Shown here: positions 7,297-56,420 of the stretch, in pieces
Layout of the letters: every line of letters begins with the position of its first letter
Position numbering within the stretch: the first letter of the stretch is position 1
Source: Podarcis liolepis
Taxonomy: Eukaryota
Length of the DNA stretch: 64,000 nucleotides
NCBI GenBank assembly: GCA_965112155.1
Contig: OZ218102.1
Reading direction: 5' to 3' (one strand)
Notes under the pieces: model-generated
Database searches by the model: none
Told to the model about the DNA's origin: nothing
The model's input: the letters and a program-made list of their open reading frames with translations, nothing else
Translations under genes and position numbers: made by a program

Positions 7297-8520
7297 TCAC
7301 ATGGAACTAGGGAATATTCTGTATAGGCATTCAAGTAGAAAATTAGAGGTATACCACAGGGTTCCCACCACCATCTGAAACCTCTTACTAAAATCTTGAT
7401 AGAATGTTTCCAAGGACTCCATAACAAAGGGAAATGTTCCTTCCTTTACAAATGGAAAGGGATGTTGGCTAAAGATAATAGTAGCCACAACTAAGAAAGT
7501 GAGTATAACTGCCAGATGCTTTAAGGACCTGAAGAATTCTTTACGTGGTTTCTTCTCCTTTTCACAGCCATGGCTACATATTTTTTCTTTTGAAATTAGC
7601 TTTATTTTGGGAATGACAATCTTGTTGACCTGACTAATTTCACTTTTGGACCACACATCTTTCAGCACCTGCCCTATTCGCGGGTAGATTTCTACAGGCT
7701 TTATATTTGGTAACGGCTTTTCCTTCAAAGCTTTAACACGCTGGCGAATATCATCAACCTTCTCCAGAAATAAGAGGGGAGATTCCTCCTCCTGAATGGC
7801 TGTATTCAGTGACATCAATTCAAGTTGTTCTTCCCGTATGCCTTTCATATTTTCAATTAGAGGTTCATATTCTGTCTCAATTTGCATGTTCACTTCTTCC
7901 AAAGCTGCAAGCAAAGCTTGTTTTTTATGATCAAGTAAATCACTGAGTCTCTTGAAATATTGCAACACAGTTTTTTTATCCTCCTGGACAATGCTCTCAC
8001 ATTGAGCTTTATGTTCTTCCAGGTTTTCAATAAGTAAACACACTTCACTCCAGTGTTTATCTGTCAGCTGTTCAAGGAGTTTGCCAGGAGTTTCCTTTTC
8101 TTTCATGTAGGCACTTTGAAGGTCGTCTATGGGATGGCCATGGTGTTTTCCTATTGTAAGACAATGGCCACATACTAGTTTTTTGTCTTGAAGACAGTAA
8201 ACATTTAGAGGTTGTCTATAATGTTCACTACACGTAGCGACATCTGGATGGTCCTCTTGCTGATACTTTTCAATTATAGCCTTTAATACAAAGTTGACAG
8301 GCAAAGATTCTGTGCCCGTCGGTGGAATTTCAACAATGCTTCTACAGTTGGGACACTTCAGTGGAAGTCTTAAGGGTCTCCATATGGAAAAGTTGCCTGA
8401 TAACTGAAGAACACTTTCCAAACAGTTTCTACAAAAAGTATGTGAACATGGCAGTACACGAGGGTCATCAAATATACTGTAGCAAATGGAACAAGTTAGT
8501 TCCTCTTCAAAATGATGCAT
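7297..8520 (-). CDS. TRIM59: Tripartite motif-containing protein 59 (RING, B-box, coiled-coil, C-terminal TM), single coding exon, 407 aa
   Basis: MHHFEEELTCSICYSIFDDPRVLPCSHTFCRNC...CPNCR RING; CSEH...C..D...VCGHC....HHGH B-box; hydrophobic LAVILTFLVVATIIF; acceptor tttttag 3 nt before the ATG; synteny with SMC4 and KPNA4. Confidence 0.97.
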   Translation of the reverse strand: MHHFEEELTCSICYSIFDDPRVLPCSHTFCRNCLESVLQLSGNFSIWRPLRLPLKCPNCRSIVEIPPTGTESLPVNFVLKAIIEKYQQEDHPDVATCSEHYRQPLNVYCLQDKKLVCGHCLTIGKHHGHPIDDLQSAYMKEKETPGKLLEQLTDKHWSEVCLLIENLEEHKAQCESIVQEDKKTVLQYFKRLSDLLDHKKQALLAALEEVNMQIETEYEPLIENMKGIREEQLELMSLNTAIQEEESPLLFLEKVDDIRQRVKALKEKPLPNIKPVEIYPRIGQVLKDVWSKSEISQVNKIVIPKIKLISKEKICSHGCEKEKKPRKEFFRSLKHLAVILTFLVVATIIFSQHPFPFVKEGTFPFVMESLETFYQDFSKRFQMVVGTLWYTSNFLLECLYRIFPSSM

Positions 8521-14739: not shown

Positions 14740-16149
14740 AGTGGACTAATGCTCTAGCATGGTATAAGGTAGTTTCCAATGTTCTTATTATACCGACACT
14801 GAGATTGGAGCCAATCTTTTTTCCAGCAGATTTTTCTTTGTCCTGTTTTATGTTTCTAAACCCGGAAGTGTCTGCGGACAGCGCTGGCTCCCGGCCTCTA
14901 GAGTGAGATGAGCGCACAACCCTAGAGTCTGTCAAGACTGGCCCGTGCGGGCAGGGGTACCTTTACCTTTACCTATGTTTCTAAAAATCTAATATTGTGC
15001 CTATATTTCACAGAAGGCCCTTCCTATGTTTCTGAGAATTCTCCTGTGAAACCCACCTGGAAACACACAGGAATTGCCACAGAGGTGTAAAAAAATACCT
15101 AGTTAATTGTTACTATGGTCATTTGAATTTAAAAGTATAAAAATTATAGTTCCCTTAGCAGATACCCATCTAGGAAATGATGCCAGTTTACCAAGAAATG
15201 TGACTATAAACCAAACACAATATAGCTGGAAAGTTCAGCTGGTTGCATGGGGCTGACAGTGCCAAGGTTGCAGGTTTAATGCCTGTAAGGGACAGCTGGA
15301 TATTCTTGAATTGCAGGGGAATGGAATCCTCAGGGTCCTTTCCAACTCTTATGATTCTAGAAAATAACTACCAAACTTTTAGAAGACATCTGAAGGCAGC
15401 CCTGTTTAGGGAAGCTTTTAATGTTTAATAGGTTATTGTATATTAGTGTTTTATTGGAAGCCACAAGTTCAAAGGTAGGAAAGTATGTAGGCGAACAGAA
15501 GTGAAATACTTTATGGAAGAAATACAAAATCGAATCTGAACTGAGCTTAAGATGGAAACGAAAGATCAGTTCCCTGATACTTGTTTCTTTTTAAACGCAA
15601 GTTTGCAAACAAAACCTGAGAGTTTCTCAATATTTATTAATGCAAGTCACTGTGAAACACTAACGTTTTATACTGTATTCTTAAGCACAAATTAATATAA
15701 AGGGATTTAAATTTAAGGAAGTTTAAATAAGGGCAAGCTGTATATGCTTTAGATCTGGACCCCTCCAGTCATTTATTTGCCAAGTAGCCCCACTCTTGAG
15801 TAATGGTATTGTTTAGATACAAATAGCTGGAGGATCGTGACCCAAGAACAGTCACCAGAAGAGGCATTTAGAACTTAAGGGATAAATTAGTATAGCAAGA
15901 AGTTGACTACAAACGATACTTGCCTTTGAGTTTTCTGGGTCTTAGGGCAGCTGTATTGTTCCGATATGCATCCAAATGCCAGAGTAGAGTGGTACTAACG
16001 AAAATGCCACGAAGTTCTTGGTGGTCACACTGTTTCCCCCCTCCCAAAAGGAGTTACCTTTACTGTTGCTCTTCTTTCTACCTACAGAAACAGGAGCACT
16101 TTTCAAGGCTCTCTCCGCCACTCCCTTAATTTCTCCCCAAACACTTCGG

Positions 16150-16580
16150 GGACGGGGCAGTCACGATGGCAACGACCTAGTACGCCCATAAAAGCCTACC
16201 TCCCCCCCTCCATTTTTATTCTTCCTCAAAATAATACACGTATCCAGCATTACATGCTCACCTCCACCTGCGGCAGCAGATCCCTCGCTCCCCGCAAATT
16301 CCTCTCAGCTTCCCCTGAATGGATCCCAGCCGGGGGCTGCTAAACCCTTCTTCCCCTCCTCCTCCAATCAGAATCGCCGGAAAGGAGGAAAGGGAAGCAG
16401 CCGCGGCAGCTCGCTGCTGCGCACGCGCCTGGGCAAGCCGGTCGTCTCGAGCCAATCAACCGCTTCGGAAGGATCAGTTCAAAAGTAAACGGCCGGACGA
16501 GGGAGGAGAATTTTATGAACGCGGTACAACAGTTCCCTCAGGTCAGCCGTTAACGGCTGCTGGAGCGGGCTGCGCCTTAG
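16150..16580 (-). promoter_or_regulatory. TRIM59: CpG-rich TRIM59 promoter and non-coding first exon
   Basis: CpG cluster; minus-strand donor GAG|GTGAGC at 16262/16261; CCAAT boxes near 16365 and 16452; CHR-like TTTGAA (minus) at 16478-16483. Confidence 0.7.
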
Positions 16581-17147
16581 AACATATTCTGTGTATTTTT
16601 GCCCCTTTCTGTTTCTTTCTTATCCCCACCCCCGCTAAGAAACTTTGGATTTCTCTTCCATAAACGGTGGATTTTTTTTTTTAAAGAGAGAAATTAAAAG
16701 TTAAAACCTTACCAGTCAGGCATACTTTTCAAAATGATGTGATTTTAAGAGGGGGGAAAGTCAACAGAATATCGGCAACCTAAGCATGCAGGCTCAAGCC
16801 ACCCCAAAGTAAACTGGGCTAGGCCCCATTGATTCCAGTAGTAGGTATGTGCTAATAACTGTATGAATTATTGCACTGAGATTTTAAAATAGCTAACTTT
16901 GTCTGGGTTGTGCCTAAAAGCAAAAGCTCCTGATTAGGGGAAAAGAAGCACTTGTGCCATCTATCTAAAAATACAGGAATTCACATATGCAACCAGTTGT
17001 CTGTAGAATCTCAGTCTTCCAGAATTGTCTGACATAACCAAAAAATGAGCCCTATGCTTTTATAGACTTAGCTCACTAATTCACAACTAATTCATTAGCA
17101 AGTTCACAGGCTCTGTGTTCGCTCATAATGCTAAGTCAGACTAAGTA

Positions 17148-19434: not shown

Positions 19435-22400
19435 CATTAAAACACAGCTCCCCATTTTGGATGTAATGGGTAACTGTGGTTTAATTAAACCACGAGTTAA
19501 GTCCCGAGAAAGAAAAGGAGGGGGAGCATGTGGTCGTCTTGCTTGTCCTGTCTGCTAAATTAGCAAGTCTGGAAAGGAATGCCTGAACCAGGTCAGTACC
19601 ATACTCTCACCACTTTTTCACTCTTTTCTTCAGGTGGTAGTGGAGATTCTCTGATTTCTAAACAAGCAACCCTGTTCAACATCTGCACTAGACTGTCCTG
19701 GATAGAAAACCAAAGAAAAGAATGCAAAGCACTCCCTCTTTTGGACACTAGAAAAAATTGATCTCAACAATGAAGTGGATATGTTATATAGCACTGAGTG
19801 ATTGACATTGCGATCTACCATCTGTTCCACAGATAATCCTCAAGACTTCATAAGTGAAAGAGCTCATGTATATTTTCTCTATGAACTAGAGTATTTATAA
19901 TTTATTGAGTCATGCTGAAGTAAAAATGCAAACATACTGAGATATGTCTGGTAAAGTAAGCTTGAAAAAGCAAATAATGATATACCGTAAATTTGCCACT
20001 GTGTCATAAATAATGTTATGCTTATCTTTCCAGAAGAAGTAAACACCTGTCTATCCTGATAAAATTAAATTTATATTTTACAGCCTCTCATGTAAACATC
20101 TGGGAAATGTCTGGAATTGTGTCTGGAAAGATAAAATCCCATTCCCTGCCTCCCTAAATCAAATAGACAAGCTTTGACAATACAAGCCTTCCCTCCCTCT
20201 AATCAGTGTTGCTTCCAACAGTTTTTTTTCCCTTAGGTGACTTTATATGAAACCAAATGCATTAAATTTGTTTTCTGTGAGCAGACTCATCATCACCATA
20301 GTTCCACTTAAGCCAAGCAGAATGAAACAGTGAATGTATTTCACAGAAAATCAGGAATAGAGCCATTCTTATTAATTTTTAGACATGTATGTACACCCAC
20401 GTTACATAAATTCCTTAAATGAATAATCTAGTCACAGGTGCCAAGTTTCCATTATCATGGTGGCATTTTTTAAAGCCACTGCAATCATTGGAATCAGTAG
20501 TTTCACGTTTTGTTATCCATATGAATCATGGATAATCCAGGGGCAGATAGCTTGTGTGCAGAAAACATGTGTAACCCTTGCTTTTTGTTTTGTTTAAATA
20601 CTTTAGATCATGGTATGAGGGTCTTTATTGTGCTGCAATCCAAACTGGCATTTGTAAAAAGGTGCCAACCTGGATCCCAGCGATACTGGTGAAAATAATA
20701 CCAGAGATTTAAGCACACTTCTTTGAAAGTAAGTAACAGTTTGAGTGCAAAGGTCTGGAGCAGATTTTTGCCTTGCAGGGAAATAGACCAGACCAAAATG
20801 CAATGGCACAAGTTACTGCTTGTAGCATTAGCCACTTGGCCTGTCAACAGTATCGAAGAATGTTACATTAACTGCTCCCTCAACATTTTGTAATAAACCT
20901 TAACAAGAGAGAACACAGTAGATTAAACTTTTTATTACTGTTTTCCACATTCCATTTTATGTCATACTAAATATGGTAGTCATGTGCTGTTATATTTTTC
21001 CATATATACACTTTTAATGTGTAAAGTATTCAATATCAGGCTCACCTTGGAGCAGTATGATAGCAATGCTACCAATAAAAACAAAAGTAAAACCATGTCA
21101 TGGCTGGAAGTATATTATCATTTTATAGCTCAGCAAATATAGAATTAGCCTTGTATTGGCTATTATCATTTGCTGTGGACTAGTTACTGCACAGCATAGT
21201 TATCAAACTGAGCTGCTTGCAAAGTTCAGGCCAGCTAAAAGTGCACTGCTTGTATTATTTTTATTAATTAAATGTCTATAGCACCCTTCATCTGAGTAAC
21301 ACAGGGTGATTTACAACATGCAATGTCTCTAGTTACAACAGAACTACTGTGCGATCTTTAATAAAGCCTTACCTTGTATAGTTCAGTGTCTGCTGAAGAA
21401 TGATCACAAGTTTGAATCTCTTTCTGCTGAAGGGGTGTGGGTTTAAATGATTTTAAACAAAGTACATTTGAGACTGCCAAGAACCAGCTAAGACAAACAG
21501 ACACAGAAAACATAGTGTGATGTAAGCTGAGAATCAAAAACTTGAATGATACATTGTCAGTGAAAGAAAGCATTTTATTTAATCCATTTTTTGGGGGGGG
21601 GAGTGTTAAGATAGTCTTGAATAAGCACCATTGTCCACATTGCACAGGGCTCCCAATACTGTTAGAGTGCACTTACTAATGCGTGACAAAATCTGTAACT
21701 TAATACATCTGCTTTTGTAAATTTACCATAGGACACTACACTACTCATTTTCTGAGTGTTTGACACTGGTGTCCTTAATGGAATTTAAGGAGTTTCCCCT
21801 TCTAATTAACTCCGGTAGTTGTCAGTACATTGCCTCATCTTTAATAGAGGCTCTCATGGTTTATTGTTTTTAAAACTGTAACTTGCATAAAGGAATAAAA
21901 AATTCTAAAATGTATTTAATTACTAAAAGGCAGGATGCCAAATCAGATGTCTGACAAGAAATCACACTCTGTCCCTAGAAAGCAGTTACGTTTTTCATCC
22001 TATATGTGTGAGCTACCATTAGTCAAGGATGGTAGGACAATCTTCACATGTGTGTTGGAACATGTTCTCAACATGTTCCTGATTGAACTCTGGCAGTGTA
22101 AAAAGGTTCTGGATGAAAGAGAGTCCTGGAAAACCGAGTTTGCTCATTTCCTCCTCCCTCCCAATCCGTTTTTGTTTTGCATGGTGTCTTTTCAGATTTG
22201 AAATTTGAAGGCAGGCCCAAGTTTGTTTTTAGTTATAAACTGCTCTGGGAGCTTTTTTAGGACGAAAAATTGGATTTTAAGAAGAAGAAAACCCCAAACA
22301 CTGCCTCTGGCACTGGAGGCAACACATAGTCGTGATGACTACTAGTAGCTATTGACAGCCTTATCTTTAATGAATTTGGCCCTTTGAAAGCTGGTGGCCT

Positions 22401-22489
22401 TCACCACAGCTTTTGAGCACAAATTCTATAGCTTTAACTATGCGCTGTGTGAAGAACTACCGGTACTTCATTTCTTCTAATGGGATGAC

Positions 22490-22798
22490 TCCGGATTCCG
22501 ACACGACGTTGAGGGGGAAAAGTTATCCCATATATACACAGCGCCTAATTTTACACACCTCCACGGCGTGCGTTTTGCCTTTTAACGAAACGCTCGAGCC
22601 CTCAGAAAAATCAGGCGGGAAAAGCGGGGCGCCATTTTTGCGCCTCGCGCCCCCTCCCCCTCCCCAACTGCCAACGACCCTCCTGACGAGACGAACGGGT
22701 CTCGGTTCCCTCAGAGGCAAGCGAGGGCAGGAGCCGCCCCTGAGGACACGCAGCTCCCGAAGTTTGTCTCCTCGGCGCGGTTTCTTAAGTTTGTCGCC
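22490..22798. promoter_or_regulatory. CpG-island promoter upstream of the TMEM127-like ORF
   Basis: High CpG density; YY1-type CGCCATTTT at 22630-22638; strong Kozak gtcgccATGg. Confidence 0.6.
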
Positions 22799-23737
22799 AT
22801 GGAGAAGGCGACCGCCAGCTTCGGGGAGTCGAAGATCGTCCGCCTCGTGCTGCTGAGGCGAAACCGGCTCCGGCGCAAAGGGAGCCTGGCGGCGGCGCTG
22901 GCTCAGAGCATGGCGCTGGCGGTGCTGGGCACGGCAGCCGCCTACCCCATCTGGGTGCTGGTGGAAGACAAGAAGCGGAGGGCGATTGTGCTGGGGGCGT
23001 CCTGGGCGATACGGCAGGACAACCCGGCTCCGGGCACGCCGCTGCTGGGCCCGTCGGGGGGCCCGATCATGCTGGCCATCGCCTGCTGCTGCTTCTTCAG
23101 CGTGGTGACGGGCTCGCTGGCTCTGGCGCTGGACTTCGTCGGCGCGCGCCTGTGCCGCTCGCTGGCGCCCCTCTTGCACTGCGTCACCGCCATGTTGATC
23201 GCATGCACGGCGGCGCTGGGCTCGTGCCTCTTGGCGCTGATCCGCGAGCGGCTGCAAACCCAGCCGGAGCTGCAAGGCTTGTCGGCCAGCCCCGGGCAGA
23301 GCCTCTTCTTGGCTTTCCTGTCGTGCACTTTGGCTTCTACCGCCACCGGGTTCAGCTGCGTGTCGCCGGCCCGGCTGGAGCCGATGCACTCGTCGTGGGA
23401 CGTCGGCGGGGCCAAGTCCTCCTTCCACGGCACGTCCGCCACTTCCCTGCCGCAGCCGCCGCCGGCGCCGCTGCACGACGAATTCCTCCCCTCGGTTCCG
23501 AAGCGCGGCCACGCGGGCAAAGTGCAGTGGCGCGAGTACGTCAACCAGCTGCCGCCCATCTTCCGGGAGGAGCTGAGGAGGAGGCAGCAGCAGCAGCAAG
23601 CTGAGCATGGACACAGCTCAGGGGAGCAGAAGGGCAATGTGGAAGAGGGAGAGCCCTTGTCCGGCGCGCGGGACGCCACACGCCAGGAGACCGTGAAGAA
23701 GGACGAATCGCATGCAGACCCCCTGTTTCTAGGGTGA
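22799..23737 (+). CDS. Intronless TMEM127-like four-TM membrane protein, 312 aa
   Basis: Strong Kozak; high GC3; four hydrophobic segments colinear with TMEM127 ([24 protein letters not shown] vs [46 protein letters not shown] vs [29 protein letters not shown] vs [24 protein letters not shown] vs VSFYLVAGAGGASILAT). Confidence 0.82.
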   Translation: [312 protein letters not shown]

Positions 23738-26272
23738 ACGGCCTCAAGCATCCAAGCCCCGTTTATTGAGGAACCCACATACCACCACAGCGGGAGAATG
23801 AACGCCAACGGGAAAGGGCGACAAGAAAACAGTTGCAAACCACCTGTCGATTTCCTTGAGAAAGATGGAGCAGATGCGAATAAAGGAGCATTTAAAGATG
23901 ACGAGTGATACTAAAACGGGGCTGGTTGGTTAAGAGAGTGACGGCCTTATTTGTTTCGAAGCTGTCATCCCCCTTCCTCTCACTAAAGGAATATCCTTAG
24001 TTTAACCTAGGAAAAAACTTGCATAAAACATTTATTCCCGTATAGGAATCAAACTGTAACCCCAGAAATGAATGATAAAATAACATTGCTTTTTATTTGC
24101 CCCTTACTGTGCACTGAAAAGTCCACCACTTCACCTTGCTACTAGGATTCCTTAATGTTTCAACACAATCTGTTCTCAAACCTGAAACGTGTATGTAAGG
24201 GGGAAACAATATTCAGGACCTCCATATTAGAAACCATCTTCAAAAGCAGGGGATAAGGAACCTATGGGCCACTAGATGTTGGAATCCTAGTCTTAAAAAG
24301 CACAGGTAGCATAACCACTGGTCAAGGATGATAGCTGTAGTCAGACATGTGGAAAACCACACATTCACCCATGCCTTAAAACAAGTGTGGTGATGGATGA
24401 GGAAAATCTCTAGTGAAAATTACAAAGGACAACTAAATGCAAAATTCCCCAAATAAGCCTGTTTTATAAAATGCTGAAAAAGTTTGGACATTTTAAAATG
24501 TTTTGTTTATATTAAGTTTAGTGCAGTTGCTTCAGCTGAACAAGTCTAGATGTGCAAGGGCGTAGCCATTTAAAATGGCAGCCAAACTCTAGATATGCAC
24601 ATGCCAGTTTAACATGCAAATTATATTTTTAGATTAGATTGTGGCTACTGTGCATAATTCCACAGAACCATGTGTAAATTCCATGATGAAGCAATATTAC
24701 TGTATAGTTTAAAACAAAAAAATTGCTAGTTCTTTCCTAACCCTTAATAAAAATCCTTACTTCTCAAATATTATAGCTTGTATGTAAAATTTAGAATAGG
24801 AACAATTGACTGGTCTACAACTTCTTCTAGATAACTACACATTCCAAAGCTTCACTAGTGTAGAGCATTTCCAAGCCATAATAGGAATATATCAAGCTAC
24901 TCTTGATGTCCTTTTAGGCCAAGTTGTTTTCAACCTCTGTATTTCTTGCAATACATTATCCATGGCTGCTTTTGTGCTCAAGCCTTCAATCAATATTCCC
25001 AAATGAAGTTTGTTGCTATCTTTTACTTTCTTCACATTTGCTCCTGGCTATTTTAGCATCCTTGCATACTTTCTACCATAATTGCTCCTTTAATAGAACA
25101 CCACTAAGATGAACAGGATGCTCCACAATTTGCAGTGGAAACAATTCTCTGCAATTCAGTATCTTAAAATCCAGAACTCGTGACATGTAGCTTCAATGCA
25201 TTTAGGACGGTACTGCTCATACCCAACTTCAGAACTGTACTGGTTTTTGAAATGGGTATTTTGAGGAACAATGTTATTTGTGCTTCTCTGTGTATAACTA
25301 GAAACATTTATAAAAGGGTGGCGGTATTCCCCCCCCCCCGCCCCCCCAAACCCTTTTTTCTCTGCTTTCAGAAATTGCTTGTGCCTGAAACTAACTTAGC
25401 AGTGTTTCCCATCTTTTCTTAAGTTACCCAGTACCCAAGGAGTTTGTACATGAAGATTAGCAGGACTCATGCACTTCCCCTCTGCTCCTGTCCCAATTCC
25501 CCTCCCTCTTTTCCTGACTTAAAAAACCATAGCTCGCCACCCAAAGTGACTGTGATTTACCTAAAACTGAAAAAAGGAGAGGGAATTGCCATGCACAGGC
25601 ACATGTGTTGGCATTATGTTTGAACAATGTCAATAAATTATTTCTGGAACCTGCCAACTGCATTAAACACCACCACCAGCACCTGGTCATTCCACAAAGA
25701 ATAGTTTTAAGAAAAACTGAAGCTTAGAGAAAGACATGTCAAATGAGAATTACTATTTGTTATCTTCTGGTAGAAATAACACTTTGAAACCCATACAATT
25801 TTAGTAGTTTCTTATTAATAGGAAAAGTAGATTACAGTATATTGAATTCTGTGGGAAGGGATAGTTGTGAAAGTTCTAGGACAACGGCTATGTATGTGAC
25901 AATGCATTTTTACAATTGATTCAGTAATAAAGGAGTAGAAAGGAGGTTATTTCATTGCAGATGTTTTCCCCTTGTTTAAAATAATTTGTGGAAGGCATGG
26001 TCTCAGGCCTAAAGAGCAAAAGAACATATTGAAACTATGCTGCTGAGTGAATGGGACAGAGGACCTACATTCAAATGTAGTCAATTTGTGTGTGGCAACC
26101 TACAGTTGGTGAAGGCTAAGAGGCATGATTTCAGAAAGGGTGAAAGGGATTATCAAATATAAGCATTATAATTTTGTTCTACTTGCTTAATCAAATAATG
26201 GCACACAAAAGCAGGTTCTGTAAATATTTGTATAGACAAAAATGCATACACCAATGTAACATTGTTGTAAGT

Positions 26273-26488: not shown

Positions 26489-26641
26489 NNNNNNNNNNNN
26501 NNNNNNNNNNNNNNNNNNNNNNNNNNNNNNNNNNNNNNNNNNNNNNNNNNNNNNNNNNNNNNNNNNNNNNNNNNNNNNNNNNNNNNNNNNNNNNNNNNNN
26601 NNNNNNNNNNNNNNNNNNNNNNNNNNNNNNNNNNNNNNNNN
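26489..26641. other. Assembly gap (153 N) within the KPNA4 3' UTR
   Basis: Run of N following a poly-A run. Confidence 0.99.
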
Positions 26642-28074: not shown

Positions 28075-28173
28075 CTAGAACTGGAACCCTTCTGCAGGTA
28101 CATTGGCAGATGAATTGAAACCAAATGTTCCACCTTGTATTGCCTCTGGAACAAGGCTTGGATCTTCATCTAT
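28075..28173 (-). CDS. KPNA4: KPNA4 exon 17 (IDEDPSLVPEAIQGGTFGFNSSANVPAEGFQF*)
   Basis: AG acceptor; TAG stop at 28077-28075; importin alpha-3 C-terminus. Confidence 0.96.
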   Translation of the reverse strand: MDEDPSLVPEAIQGGTFGFNSSANVPAEGFQF

Positions 28174-28189
28174 CTGTAAATGAACCACA

Positions 28190-29866
28190 AAGACCAGAAA
28201 TAAGAATCTTCCAGGCTTCCAGTCCCACCTGCCTTAATGGAGGCAGCCCTCACGATAGCAAGTGATCATCACCAAATGAAAAACAAGAATGACAGAGGGC
28301 AAATCATCATTGCAAATTCACCCCAGGGATGGGGGGAACGGGCTTCACTTGCAGTTCGTCTCGGTACTTGGCTCTTGCTCTGGCATGGAATGCGCTGAGT
28401 GCAAAAGCACTTTGCCTGGCGAAAACCCTCCTACGCCGCCATTAAGAAGAGGAGGTTCTCCATTGAATTGGATCCTTAATTGGCTTTAAAGTACTGGCAT
28501 GTGATGGAAAAGGGTTGCAACAACATACTGTGGAATATACCAGCTACATGGGTCAAAGGTTTGAACTGAGATAAGATTTTCTTCGGTGTGGGAGCTGGTT
28601 GGGGAGAGGGAACCCCACAGTTTGTTTATTCTAAGCTTTTATATATTTATGATTCAGCAATAAGATAAAAAGATATTTACAAGTGAGGAAGGGACGTTGG
28701 AGTAATAGTGATATTAACAAGCAAAAATGGAAACAGATTGATCTGAAATGAACGGAGGGGGAGGGGAAGCTCAAGTATGACTATGTTAGAATTATTAAGA
28801 CCAGGGGTCAGCAAATGTTTTCAGCAGGGGGGTGGTGCACTGTCCCTCAGACCTTGTGGAGGGCCGAACTATATTTTTTTTTGGGGGGGGGAGATGAAGG
28901 AATTCCTATGCCCCACAAATAACCCAGAGATGCATTTTAAATAAAATGGCACATTCAACTCATGTAAAAACACGCTGATTCCCGGACCGTCCGCAGGTCA
29001 GATTTAAAGGCGATTGGGCTGGATCTGGCCCCCCGGCCTTAGTTTGCCTACCCATGATTAAGACAGATTAATTCCCCTCAACTCCGTTTAAAAACGACAG
29101 ACAAGGAAAAAGACTGAGATTTTTGCATGCTACTGATGGAATGTAATCTAAGATAAAGTTTAAATGGGCCATAAATCTCTTGCTGGAAGGAAAAGAATTT
29201 GGGGGTTGTGATAAGAACATTGCAGGGATTCTGGGAGTTAGAAAGGAGTATTAAATCTTCAGCACGTTCGAAAACTGCCCACCTTTTCCTAGGCTGAGGG
29301 GAAAATGGCGAAGATCTGCAACATGTTTTACTAGTGAGACAGAATGGTTTCCAGCAGACTGTCGCCAGTTCCAAGACATTGAAGCAAGGGACGGAGAGCT
29401 AAGACCTTTGAGAAACTTTGAGATTCAGTTCCGCCCCAAGCCACAATGGGAAAAAACAACAGCTGGGAAGTGAAAGAGACAACACCATATACGGACAGAA
29501 GGAATCTCCATGGACATAATAGTTTTCACATGCAGGGCAGAATAAATATAAAGTGTGAGTTCCTCACTTGAAGTTTTATATATTTATATATTGTAACATC
29601 ACGAATGGAAATCATTAATTATGTATCTGTTGACTGAGGGATTATTATTATAACCAAAATATAACTGACATTGATTAAGATTATGGAATGCAGTGATACA
29701 AGATCGGAAATGCATCCAAACCACCATGCGGGGAGCCACTTTAACTAAAATGTATTAATTGGAAGTTGATTGGCATTTTCATAATTGTATAATTTGGGAA
29801 TTAATTGTTATTGTTTTAATTTGGCTATTATTGGGGGTATATTGGAAAACTAACAAAAAAAAAAAA
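28190..29866 (+). mobile_element. Probable degenerate poly-A retroelement (L1-like) in KPNA4 intron 16
   Basis: CpG-containing 5' part and purine-rich body ending in ttggaaaactaac(a)n tail; family not firmly identified, boundaries approximate. Confidence 0.35.
28802..29056. mobile_element. hAT (Charlie-like) MITE
   Basis: TIRs caggggtcagcaaa / tttgcctacccatg; perfect 8-bp TSD attaagac. Confidence 0.88.
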
Positions 29867-33304: not shown

Positions 33305-33617
33305 CTCTTGGATCAGATCACATTCCTTTTGCCTAACAAAAGGAACCTGTTAGAGGTTTAAAATGTCTAGATGCAAACTGCGAGCTTATTTTGGGCTCTA
33401 ATCACTGGCAATGTTGCAGTAAACCCAGATGATTTAGCAACAAGGCCTCAGATGCACTGCGAAATCAACAGCTTCTTTATCAGTGCCCACAGTTTACATC
33501 ACTATATAACTTTTACACAACCAACCCCTTTTACCTCAGACTAAAATTTTCCCCCCCTTCCCTAATGTACACACCCCTTACTATTCCCTATTACCTCCAT
33601 TTCATCATTTCCAAGAG
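33305..33617 (-). ncRNA. SCARNA7: Box C/D small Cajal body RNA SCARNA7 (U90) in KPNA4 intron 12
   Basis: Terminal stem CTCTTGGA/TCCAAGAG; box C ATGATGA (33608-33602); box D CTGA (33316-33313); about 313 nt; 5' end TGGAAATGATGAAAT resembles mammalian U90, whose known host gene is KPNA4. Confidence 0.85.
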
Positions 33618-43620: not shown

Positions 43621-43710
43621 CACTCTGAAGTCACCATCTATATCAGAATCTTCACAGATATCTTCATGAGGTACGTTTCGTCTCTTTAACAGATGCTCAT
43701 CTCTTTTGTT
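43621..43710 (-). CDS. KPNA4: KPNA4 exon 3 (IBB domain)
   Basis: [30 protein letters not shown]; AG/GT. Confidence 0.96.
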
Positions 43711-46364: not shown

Positions 46365-46409
46365 CTTTCTTAATTCCACAACGACTTCATTTCGTTGTCT
46401 TCTCATAGT
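46365..46409 (-). CDS. KPNA4: KPNA4 exon 2 (IBB domain)
   Basis: TMRRQRNEVVVELRK; AG/GT. Confidence 0.96.
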
Positions 46410-54439: not shown

Positions 54440-56420
54440 CAGCTGAGTGGGTGGGTAGAGAGGGGCGCCTCCATCCGCTCCAGCAGGGCTGCTGTCCTCC
54501 TCCCATTTCCCGCTCTGCTAACCCTGGCCCCAGCTACTGCCCCTTCCCACCCGCCTGCCGGGAAAGTCCGAGGCCCAGGACGGAAAAGGAGAGGCAGAAA
54601 AGGCCTGCCCCGCTCTCTCCTCCAACGCCCCCCCCCCTCGCGAAGCATCCTCGCCACGGTGAGCAGAAGCGGCCAGGCCTGGGCCCTCCCAAAGCCCGCG
54701 GGTACGGAGTGGCGACGCGTCCCCTCGTGAGGAAAAGCCAGCCAACCCCACCCACCCGCCGGCCGGCCTGCCCTGTCTCTCCGCTGACGGAGCGGCCGAC
54801 TCGGGCTCAGGCCTCGCCTCGAGGTAGGTAGGCCCCGCCACGGGAGATTAGCAGAGACGCCACAGCCAACCGCCTCTGCGGCGGAGGCCTTGTCCGAACT
54901 GATCCCCGACCTCGCTTGCCGGCCCACCCGGCCCCTCCCTTCGCGCGAAGCGGGCTGCTAGGCCCGGGCTAAGGAGGGAGAAGAGCTACCTCCAGGTCTC
55001 GGCCTTTGTTCTTAAAGTTCTTCAGCCGTTGGTTGTCCAGCTTCTCGTTGTCGGCCATGGCGGGAGGTAGGGAGCGCGGCCTCTCCTCTTGCCTCTCCTC
55101 CCTCCTCTTTCTCCGTCGACACCCAGGCCGGACCCAGCCGGGCCCCTTCTTCCCGGCGCCGCTTCCGCCCCTTCGCCTCGCTCGCTCGCCTTCCCTTCTG
55201 CGCCGCGGCGGGTCTCCCTGGCTGGCCTGGCTTGGTGGCGGGCTGGCGGGCCAAACCGGGCGGCCTCCTCCTCCTCCTCTCGCCTGCTCAAGTCGCTCCC
55301 GGCTGGCTTAGGCCTTCCCAGGGCGGCGGAATGTGCCGGTAGCGAAGGGAAGAGAGAGCGAGAGAGAGAGAGAAAGATAGGGGGGAGGGAGGGGAGGGGA
55401 CGGGCATGGGGCAGGGGAGGAGGCAACAGCCTCGCTCTCAGACGGACGGCAACGGCCACGCCCACCTCTCCCTCCCTCGCGCGCGCTCGCTCTCCCTCTC
55501 CCTCTCCACCCCTCCTCCCGGCACCATCCCCCTCCGACAAGCGCTGGCCTGATTGGCTGGCTCTCCTTGATGGGCAAAGGGGAGGCTCGCCGGCACACTG
55601 GAAAGAGTGGAGGTGGGTGGGAGGAAAATACGCATTCGAGGGGGAGGGGGGAGGAGGAGAGGAGAAGAAGGCGGGGCCGTGAGGGGAGCGAACTGCGCGA
55701 GCTCGGGTTTCGCAGCGTATTTCCTTCCCCAACCGCCAGGGGGGAAGCGGCTCTTTCCCCGCCCCCTCACGCGCGCACACGCCCAGGCGCGAGGCCCTGG
55801 CAGCCATTTTGGGGGCTGTGAGGCGGCTTCGGGAGCGCCGTCCCCGGAGTAGGGCAGGAGGAGCTCTTAGGCTGGCCGCTTTTGGCAGGGGAATAAAAGG
55901 CACGACCGGGTTGTTTTCGGCAGATTTATCCCTTCCTTCCTTCATTTATTTCCTCCCCCGCCCATCATCGTATCGAAGAAGAGCCGGAGAAGCTCGCGGA
56001 AAGCCCTGGTTCAGAAGTTGCGCACTTAAGTCGCGTTGAGTTCAGTGGTGCGAGGTTAACCCTCAGGAAAACGGGGCGTAGGGTCGCAGCCTGTGTGTGT
56101 GTGTGTGTCTTTTTTTTGGAAACAGTCGCCAAAGTCAGCAGGTAAGCCGCAGGGGTCAGGCATGTTCCGGGGGGAGGCACGGTAACGCTCCTTCCCATCT
56201 CCGGCGGCTCCTGCCAGAAAAGTCCCTTGCGGAGCAGAGGCGGACTCAGCCTCGCACACTGCCAAGAAAGAAGAGCGCTGATCGAGGACGTGAAATCGGG
56301 CGCGTCCTCATCTGAACGTTTGAAAAGACGAAACGGCGCGGTTTTATTGCGCCTGCTGGGAGAACCGAATACAGAAGCGACACGGGCGCCGTCCCCGTTT
56401 TGCTGTCCTCTGTGCGGTTC
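54440..56420. promoter_or_regulatory. KPNA4: KPNA4 CpG-island promoter
   Basis: About 2 kb GC/CpG-rich tract spanning exon 1; CCAAT (gattgg 55551), GC boxes, YY1-like gccatttt 55803, (GA)n tract. Confidence 0.85.
54990..55058 (-). CDS. KPNA4: KPNA4 exon 1 coding part (importin alpha-3 start)
   Basis: ccgccATGg Kozak; MADNEKLDNQRLKNFKNKGRDLE; donor gtagct; the 17 exons sum to 1566 nt (521 aa plus stop). Confidence 0.97.

Follow-up and report, generated by a model that had tools for sequence, protein, structure and literature searches.

A probable deep paralogue of TMEM127 with a predicted claudin-type fold between TRIM59 and KPNA4 in the lizard Podarcis liolepis

Introduction

TMEM127 is a tumour suppressor, conserved across vertebrates, and the adaptor through which the ligase WWP2 clears the cell surface of major histocompatibility complex (MHC) molecules of both classes (MHC-I, MHC-II), of RET and of cytokine-receptor chains. 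To our knowledge, the gene is usually regarded as single-copy, with no paralogues. Here, we report on an open reading frame (ORF) of 312 amino acids (aa) at positions 22799-23737, plus strand, of a 64,000-nucleotide (nt) stretch of DNA from Podarcis liolepis (assembly GCA_965112155.1, contig OZ218102.1), the whole of which is called the window in the following. Probably, this ORF is a functional single-exon gene and the lizard orthologue of a gene of early jawed-vertebrate origin, which occurs from ray to birds, is a deep paralogue of TMEM127 and encodes a protein of the claudin/PMP22 fold. The function proposed for it further below is one that we infer.

Human TMEM127 (238 aa, Pfam family PF20517) is an endosomal/lysosomal protein. 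Its first transmembrane helix (TM1) spans residues 30-53, and the substitution W53S is pathogenic. The protein is internalised through an acidic dileucine motif (bioRxiv 10.1101/2020.04.08.031039), and its PPAY motif with Y236 is needed to bind WWP2 (PMC7342019, PMC12720080) and likewise NEDD4. The window protein has in common with it four TM helices and a TM1 that is rich in Ala and other small residues and is followed by an invariant Trp; both of its termini are predicted to be cytosolic, by analogy to the topology of human TMEM127. The two differ in the length of the tail (~45 aa in TMEM127 versus ~124 aa), in the coding sequence (CDS), which is multi-exon in TMEM127 and a single exon here, and in chromosomal neighbourhood. 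In contrast to TMEM127, no member of the window family carries a PPxY (PY) motif, and the acidic dileucine motif of the TMEM127 tail is kept by the anamniote orthologues but missing in the sauropsid members.

TMEM127 has been put in the same functional class as NDFIP1 and NDFIP2 (PMC7342019), PY-motif adaptors of NEDD4-family ligases which are likewise small, cross the membrane several times and belong to the endocytic system. They have no sequence relation to the window protein and, with PY motifs missing throughout its family, a PY-dependent mode of action would be unexpected. The claudin, PMP22, MP20, TARP-gamma and LHFPL tetraspans have in common with it the predicted fold, a left-handed bundle of four helices in which loop 1 forms a beta-hairpin (Z 15.1-13.0 over 148-161 residues), at an identity of just 10-16%. 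The loop-1 signature W-GLW-C-C of the claudins and its disulphide are missing, and the Trp after TM1 alone is kept.

Results and Discussion

The gene and its signals

The ORF begins with an ATG and runs through 312 codons in a single uninterrupted frame to a TGA. It is a real gene, as established by its homologues, by a GC content of 0.89 at third versus 0.52 at second codon positions (0.65 at first positions), and by indels that preserve the frame. Length by itself is weak evidence in such GC-rich DNA, because the opposite strand carries ORFs of 363 aa (22523-23614) and 298 aa (22942-23838) that overlap the gene; 312 aa is reached by just 0.4% of first-order Markov simulations. The two antisense ORFs have no homologues among the matches found, and they are best explained as a by-product of the sense frame, whose GC-rich third positions would remove antisense stops.

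The start codon lies in the context GTCGCCATGG, with G at -3 and G at +4 (GCCATGG). The first in-frame stop in 5' direction is found at 22583, and the 311 nt preceding the ATG (22488-22798) contain no further ATG. This leader includes a TATA-like TATATA at 22531, and the transcription start site would be placed within it. An imperfect 23-nt direct repeat (74% identity, spacing 27) at 22749-22798 abuts the start codon in the presumed 5' untranslated region (UTR). Promoter region and gene are covered as a whole by a CpG island at about 22251-24000 (GC 0.51-0.71, CpG observed/expected ratio 0.78-0.99 in 500-nt windows), flanked by DNA with a ratio of 0.06-0.3. On the 3' side, an AATAAA poly(A) signal at 23879-23884, 142 nt beyond the stop codon, is followed by a GT-rich stretch, and the mRNA is predicted to end at about 23900-23965. 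A preliminary description of this DNA had listed an intact intronless ORF with a strong Kozak context, its own CpG island and four hydrophobic segments, all of which is borne out by sequence, hydropathy and structure prediction. A scan for promoters and terminators of bacterial type, not relevant to lizard DNA, gave no result.

Orthologues and phylogeny

A word-index search with the window protein matched nine squamate proteins. The best relative is LOC133373771 of the amphisbaenian Rhineura floridana (E 5.7e-98, 56% identity over 97% of the query), and the others come from Sceloporus, Phrynocephalus, Notechis and several further assemblies; the squamate orthologues, from geckos, iguanians and snakes, extend down to E ~1e-45. 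With phmmer, 22 proteins were found among 1.84 billion representatives. They include the geckos Sphaerodactylus and Gekko among the squamates, the turtle Carettochelys (LOC142018432), an alligator, swans and goose (LOC121074598 and others) and a duck, whose database name is 'TMEM127 transmembrane region domain-containing protein'. Amphibian members are the frogs Spea, Bufo ('TMEM127-like'), Hyperolius and Xenopus laevis as well as caecilians (again 'TMEM127-like'), and the fishes contribute coelacanth, bowfin and electric ray. The window protein finds the anamniote members with E 5e-12 to 1e-4 (4e-5 for the ray).

The database entries named 'transmembrane protein 127-like' or 'uncharacterized LOC', e.g., Bufo bufo XP_040275261, Rhinatrema XP_029449678, Sceloporus LOC121926631, Cygnus LOC121074598 and the Rhineura entry, are orthologous to the window protein according to phmmer, hhalign and the tree. 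Squamate entries carry neither a family name nor a Pfam domain. Within the family, the window gene belongs to the lacertoid side, with Rhineura nearest to it. The exact window protein and the TRIM59 of the window are absent from a collection of 15 billion sequences. A literature search for 'TMEM127-like' and 'tmem127l' found no paper, and the family thus deserves the attribute "little-described" that it had been given.

A maximum likelihood tree of 26 family members (LG+C20+F+G4) separates an anamniote and a sauropsid clade with 100/100 support each. Frogs and caecilians group together in the former; turtle, alligator, birds and squamates (99/97) are resolved in the latter, and the window protein is sister to Rhineura (97/91). 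The stem between the two clades is long, with ~3 changes per column, and the terminal branch of the window protein equals the family median (0.55). Since each species has one copy and the topology resembles the species tree, the tree argues for vertical descent of the family from an early jawed-vertebrate gene. Retention in reptiles, as proposed at the outset, is therefore too narrow a description for a gene whose orthologues range from ray to birds.

Relationship to TMEM127 and predicted fold

Both clades belong to one family: an hhalign comparison of the sauropsid profile (A3) with the anamniote profile (A4) yields a probability of 99.8% and an E of 1.9e-30 over 165 columns, which cover TM1 to TM4. 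When the 27 family members were scanned singly, 13 of them, anamniote and bird proteins, matched PF20517 at E<=0.01, and any other family was matched by at most two. The gathering score of PF20517 (25.3 bits) is passed by duck (30.2 bits), Spea (30.4 bits), Xenopus (26.7 bits) and the coelacanth Latimeria (55.3 bits, E 8.4e-15), for which Claudin_2 follows as second-best family with 22.6 bits. No member among the 27 passes the gathering score of any claudin-type Pfam family. We consider the kinship to TMEM127 real but transitive, as it is known through profiles and intermediate sequences and not through canonical TMEM127 sequences. The low PF20517 scores, the missing C-terminal PPxY and the '-like' names given by NCBI indicate that the family members are paralogues and not orthologues of canonical TMEM127.

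The fold was predicted with AlphaFold2 (AF2), using model 2 on an alignment of 27 sequences. The mean predicted local distance difference test score (pLDDT) is 75.6 and exceeds 90 in the membrane core, which consists of four helices; hydropathy agrees with their placement. TM1 (residues 30-48, 22886-22942; all coordinates of protein segments refer to the plus strand) is Ala-rich with a conserved Gln36 and is followed by the invariant Pro50 and Trp52, the latter in the same relative place as W53 of human TMEM127. Extracellular loop 1 (residues 49-83) has neither a cysteine nor an N-glycosylation site. The hallmark of the claudin fold, a beta-hairpin (residues 53-65, 22955-22993; strands 53-56 and 62-65), is assigned to this loop by DSSP in both AF2 models. 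TM2 (residues 84-114, 23048-23140) contains a CC motif (C97, C98) and ends on the cytosolic side with LDF(L/V)G. TM3 (residues 120-154, 23156-23260) is described as beginning at the family-invariant His127, and TM4 (residues 167-188, 23297-23362) follows a conserved G-x-S (G166, S168). The cytosolic tail (residues 189-312, 23363-23734) is mostly disordered and fast-evolving, with a helical segment at residues 242-270 (23522-23608, pLDDT 75-88).

Conservation follows the membrane core. P50, W52, V55, G66, H127, S168 and A182 are invariant in all 27 members, and A32, A33, Q36, A48, G87, C98, A108, D112, F113, L144, G166 and S186 are nearly so; all of these residues lie in or beside the membrane helices. 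Over 13 sauropsid sequences, 27 columns are invariant, all of them within residues 26-183 (TM1-TM4) and none in the tail. At two sites that are nearly invariant, the window protein has a residue other than that of the squamate consensus (G47A, S51I).

An exhaustive structural comparison placed claudin-19 on top (Z 15.1, root-mean-square deviation 3.0, 148 residues), followed by MP20 (14.4), claudin-15 (13.9), a designed claudin fold, TARP gamma-7 (13.4) and claudin-4, with Z down to 13.0, and generic helical bundles rank lower (Z<=12). Foldseek returned the same families with E ~1e-3 from a first, shallow AF2 model. Judged from these models, the window protein is a member of the claudin/PMP22 fold. 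Among PDB sequences, the squamate profile had no match and the profile of the whole family had weak ones to TARP gamma-7 and claudin-15 chains (E 0.004-0.03); in neither search was a TMEM127 chain matched.

Several results, together with part of the expression data given below, weigh against a functional gene of TMEM127 kinship. The window ORF has no meaningful match in Pfam or NCBIfam and does not match PF20517 even at E<=10, nor do any of 12 squamate sequences. Canonical TMEM127 was returned neither by phmmer nor by word-index searches: in the latter, a Latimeria query retrieved itself only, and the family alignment retrieved the family only. A feature-based ranking places the Claudin_2, ODF4 and LHFPL clusters (0.90-0.88) ahead of the TMEM127 cluster (0.87) for the window protein, and claudin, clarin and LHFPL first for Latimeria. 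The apparent absence of the gene from mammals and teleosts, none of which is found among the phmmer matches, refers to searches with a divergent query. ODF4 and TMEM225, leads from the feature-based ranking, were rejected, as neither came with any Pfam or profile match.

Much of this is what one would expect if the protein were a generic tetraspan of the claudin superfamily and the PF20517 matches reflected superfamily-level similarity only. The feature-based rankings, the missing Pfam match of the window ORF, the fact that most PF20517 matches stay below the gathering score, and the weak matches to TARP gamma-7 and claudin-15 all point this way. We nevertheless regard this explanation as unlikely, for PF20517 is the top and sole recurrent family (13 of 27 members, versus at most two for claudin-type families), and Latimeria reaches 55 bits with it versus 22.6 with Claudin_2. 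Moreover, an intron position before TM2 appears to be common to the family and human TMEM127, the dileucine motif in the tail parallels TMEM127, and the Cys pair of claudin loop 1 is missing. We therefore keep the interpretation as a deep paralogue of TMEM127, of which the squamate members are the most derived. The attribute "TMEM127-like", first assigned to the window ORF from its hydrophobic helices, holds by way of its orthologues, but a profile scan of the ORF itself does not reveal it.

Selection and expression

Two kinds of reads were available: three small runs of a sister species (~3% diverged), guessed to be RNA, and the raw reads of a tag-type single-cell RNA library from another relative, sampled to 12%. 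Within the ORF, the listed indels relative to the sister species measure 3, 6, 6 and 9 nt, so that four out of four are multiples of three, and the stop codon is preserved by the 9-nt indel. Those listed outside the ORF measure 2, 8, 1, 1, 5, 4, 1 and 12 nt, with one multiple of three out of eight (Fisher p=0.01). The listed substitutions in the ORF, an incomplete set, comprise eight non-synonymous ones, all conservative, and four synonymous ones (ratio ~0.7). Over this short range, the ORF is only mildly constrained, and the 8:4 proportion of substitutions is a weak sign of the retention under selection stated earlier.

In each of the three small runs, the contigs begin at 21560-21587, cover the ORF and reach 23967, 23694 and 23463, respectively, the last one in pieces. 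Their depth is 11-25 there, versus 2.6-5.9 over 23949-25308, and in one run it drops across the 3' half of the ORF. Shotgun data of that size cannot assemble single-copy DNA so deeply, and the runs should therefore be RNA or capture data. No strand can be assigned to these contigs. Among the raw reads, which are stranded, most come from the minus strand and lie upstream of the ORF, with a peak at 21634-21900; only ~3 plus-strand reads fall at 23510-23911, the expected 3' end of the ORF mRNA, so that sense expression is barely shown. A minus-strand AATAAA at 21579-21574 adjoins both this read peak and the contig starts. There appears to be a polyadenylated minus-strand RNA, 21560-22840, that runs from the island down to about 21560 without a convincing ORF. 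It could be a divergent transcript of the promoter or a distal 3' UTR isoform of KPNA4 running antisense through the ORF.

On these data, one may ask if the ORF is a silent or decaying relic and the RNA of the locus comes from the minus strand, be it as a divergent non-coding RNA or as a long isoform of the KPNA4 3' UTR that extends to about 21560. The strand distribution of the reads, the poly(A) signal at the contig starts, the falling depth in one run, the substitution ratio and the replacements G47A and S51I can all be cited for it. Yet the ORF is intact with every family-invariant residue in place, the indels are all in frame, and the terminal branch does not exceed the family median. A strong Kozak context, an ATG-free leader and an own poly(A) signal likewise speak against a relic. 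The raw reads, furthermore, represent a tag-type single-cell library of another species at a 12% sample, whose low counts say little. In sum, a relic is improbable, and we retain the functional gene as the better description. That the gene is transcribed had been left for reads to decide: the locus is likely transcribed, as the contigs indicate, and its sense strand is weakly supported by the few plus-strand reads, with most stranded reads on the minus strand.

History of the gene structure

For three caecilian species, predicted isoform pairs diverge within the coding region. In Rhinatrema, this occurs ~20 residues before the 'CC' of TM2, in Microcaecilia directly after the invariant His that opens TM3, and in Geotrypetes in the tail. 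From these three points, it follows that the caecilian orthologues have coding introns. In human TMEM127, an intron ends before c.245, codon 82 (NM_017849.4:c.245-1G>C), three residues before Met85; residues C84 and M85 of the human protein were confirmed. Caecilian orthologues and human TMEM127 alike thus have an intron shortly before TM2, which the window CDS lacks. The next human intron, which we take to be at c.409/410, would lie just after the corresponding His. This comparison suggests that the paralogue was born by duplication at the DNA level. As the caecilian orthologues have coding introns, the single-exon CDS of the lizard gene is probably derived.

The length of the stem branch would be consistent with a retroposition event in stem sauropsids. 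Neither a flanking direct repeat (target-site duplication) nor an A-tract was found at the locus, which is expected if the event is old and hence uninformative about it. A reptile-specific retrocopy of canonical TMEM127, which might be suspected from the intronless CDS, as opposed to the coding introns of TMEM127, and from a human locus that is not known to hold such a gene, is highly improbable in view of orthologues in ray, bowfin, coelacanth, amphibians, birds, crocodilian and turtle, a species-like tree, introns in caecilians, a divergence from the TMEM127 profile far above that of a reptile-age copy, and the lack of a poly(A) remnant and flanking direct repeats. Between the two origins initially offered, an old retrogene or a divergent paralogue, the second one stands, and a retrogene of reptile age is excluded by taxonomic spread and tree.

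Motifs and a possible mechanism

A motif scan found PPxY or LPxY in none of ~38 family sequences, the window protein included, and the sole Tyr of the window tail stands in the context R-E-Y. The tail of the window protein contains neither an acidic dileucine nor a YxxPhi motif. An E[ST]xxLL followed by acidic residues is present in Latimeria, Xenopus, Bufo, Amia, Geotrypetes and family member P0017, and Narcine has EEGTLI; no sauropsid tail that was scanned has an acidic dileucine. The distribution of NxT sites in loop 1 is similar, with sites in anamniote but not in sauropsid members. Squamate tails have in common an SSWD-x-G box after TM4 and a G-K-x-x-W-x-x-Y-hydrophobic box, which runs into the predicted helix. 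A 'QPPPAP' of the window tail was considered as a decayed PPxY and rejected as a probable chance resemblance, since its conservation fails already in Rhineura and PY motifs are missing from all relatives.

By analogy to TMEM127, the transmembrane bundle would bind other membrane proteins. The Ala-rich TM1 with its Gln, the Trp that follows this helix, the His with which TM3 opens and the Asp-Phe behind TM2 are proposed as binding elements. Unlike in TMEM127, docking of NEDD4-family ligases via a PY motif would not be possible, and a function as NEDD4-family E3 adaptor, suggested previously from the likeness to TMEM127, cannot simply be transferred to a family without PPxY or LPxY. The anamniote orthologues are probably routed through the endocytic system by adaptor protein (AP) complexes, since they keep the acidic dileucine E-[ST]-x-x-L-L. 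The sauropsid proteins would have lost this signal and the glycosylation site in loop 1, and their tail would have become long and fast-evolving, with one short helical box under conservation. Their probable role is that of a scaffold or auxiliary subunit which works without a ligase and may reside at the cell surface.

From a biological point of view, the family would provide most jawed vertebrates, apparently not mammals, with a second, very divergent member of the TMEM127 family, in which the TM core is kept and the PY motif is never present. In the sauropsid member, the sorting signal and all coding introns would be gone as well. Such a protein could serve as a natural separation-of-function variant that indicates what the membrane core of TMEM127 does alone. 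The assignment also offers a name for 'uncharacterized LOC' genes in reptile and bird annotations, and does not introduce a new kind of system.

A more far-reaching scenario, which we regard as speculative and improbable, views the sauropsid gene as the retroposed replacement of an ancient TMEM127 ohnologue. It would have landed between TRIM59 and KPNA4 in the sauropsid stem, and lost its signals for trafficking and ligase docking. Blind to ligases, it would now compete with TMEM127, or team up with it, for transmembrane clients such as immune receptors. If true, non-mammalian amniotes would possess a brake on TMEM127-driven receptor degradation that was lost in mammals.

Genomic neighbourhood

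Both genes named in the preliminary description as neighbours, TRIM59 and KPNA4, were found at the flanks of the ORF. A coding exon of TRIM59, named from a reading of the sequence, lies at 7297-8520 on the minus strand and encodes a 407-aa ORF with RING, B-box and TM segments; the gene described here is located upstream of it. KPNA4, likewise on the minus strand, is represented by exon 1 (MADNEKLDNQRLKNFKNKGRDLE, near 55050), exon 2 (near 46400), exon 3 (near 43690) and the last two coding exons, and the located exons extend from ~55050 down to 28075. A six-frame motif search placed the end of the last coding exon (...PAEGFQF, stop codon 28077-28075) at 28075-28190. The ORF gene is located 4.3 kb past the KPNA4 stop codon in convergent (tail-to-tail) orientation. 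Two minus-strand AATAAA signals at 24036-24031 and 24097-24092 (24031-24097) probably mark the end of the KPNA4 3' UTR, ~100 nt from the poly(A) region of the ORF gene; the contigs of lower depth over 23949-25308 are in line with this. The TRIM59-KPNA4 and TRIM13-KCNRG-KPNA3 regions are paralogous, and we know of no such gene in the human TRIM59-KPNA4 interval.

The presumed KPNA4 3' UTR contains a run of 153 N at 26489-26641. A second CpG-rich patch (16001-16750, GC 0.51-0.55, observed/expected ratio 0.80-0.87), at a distance of ~7.5 kb on the upstream side of the TRIM59 coding exon, is a candidate for the promoter or first exon of TRIM59, in which case the island at 22.2-24.0 kb would not be needed for that gene. 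The sole match of the window at the Rfam gathering level is SCARNA7 (RF01295, 130.6 bits, full length), at 33308-33613 on the minus strand in an intron of KPNA4. Mammalian KPNA4 hosts SCARNA7, and the presence of this RNA in the intron thus fits the identification of KPNA4.

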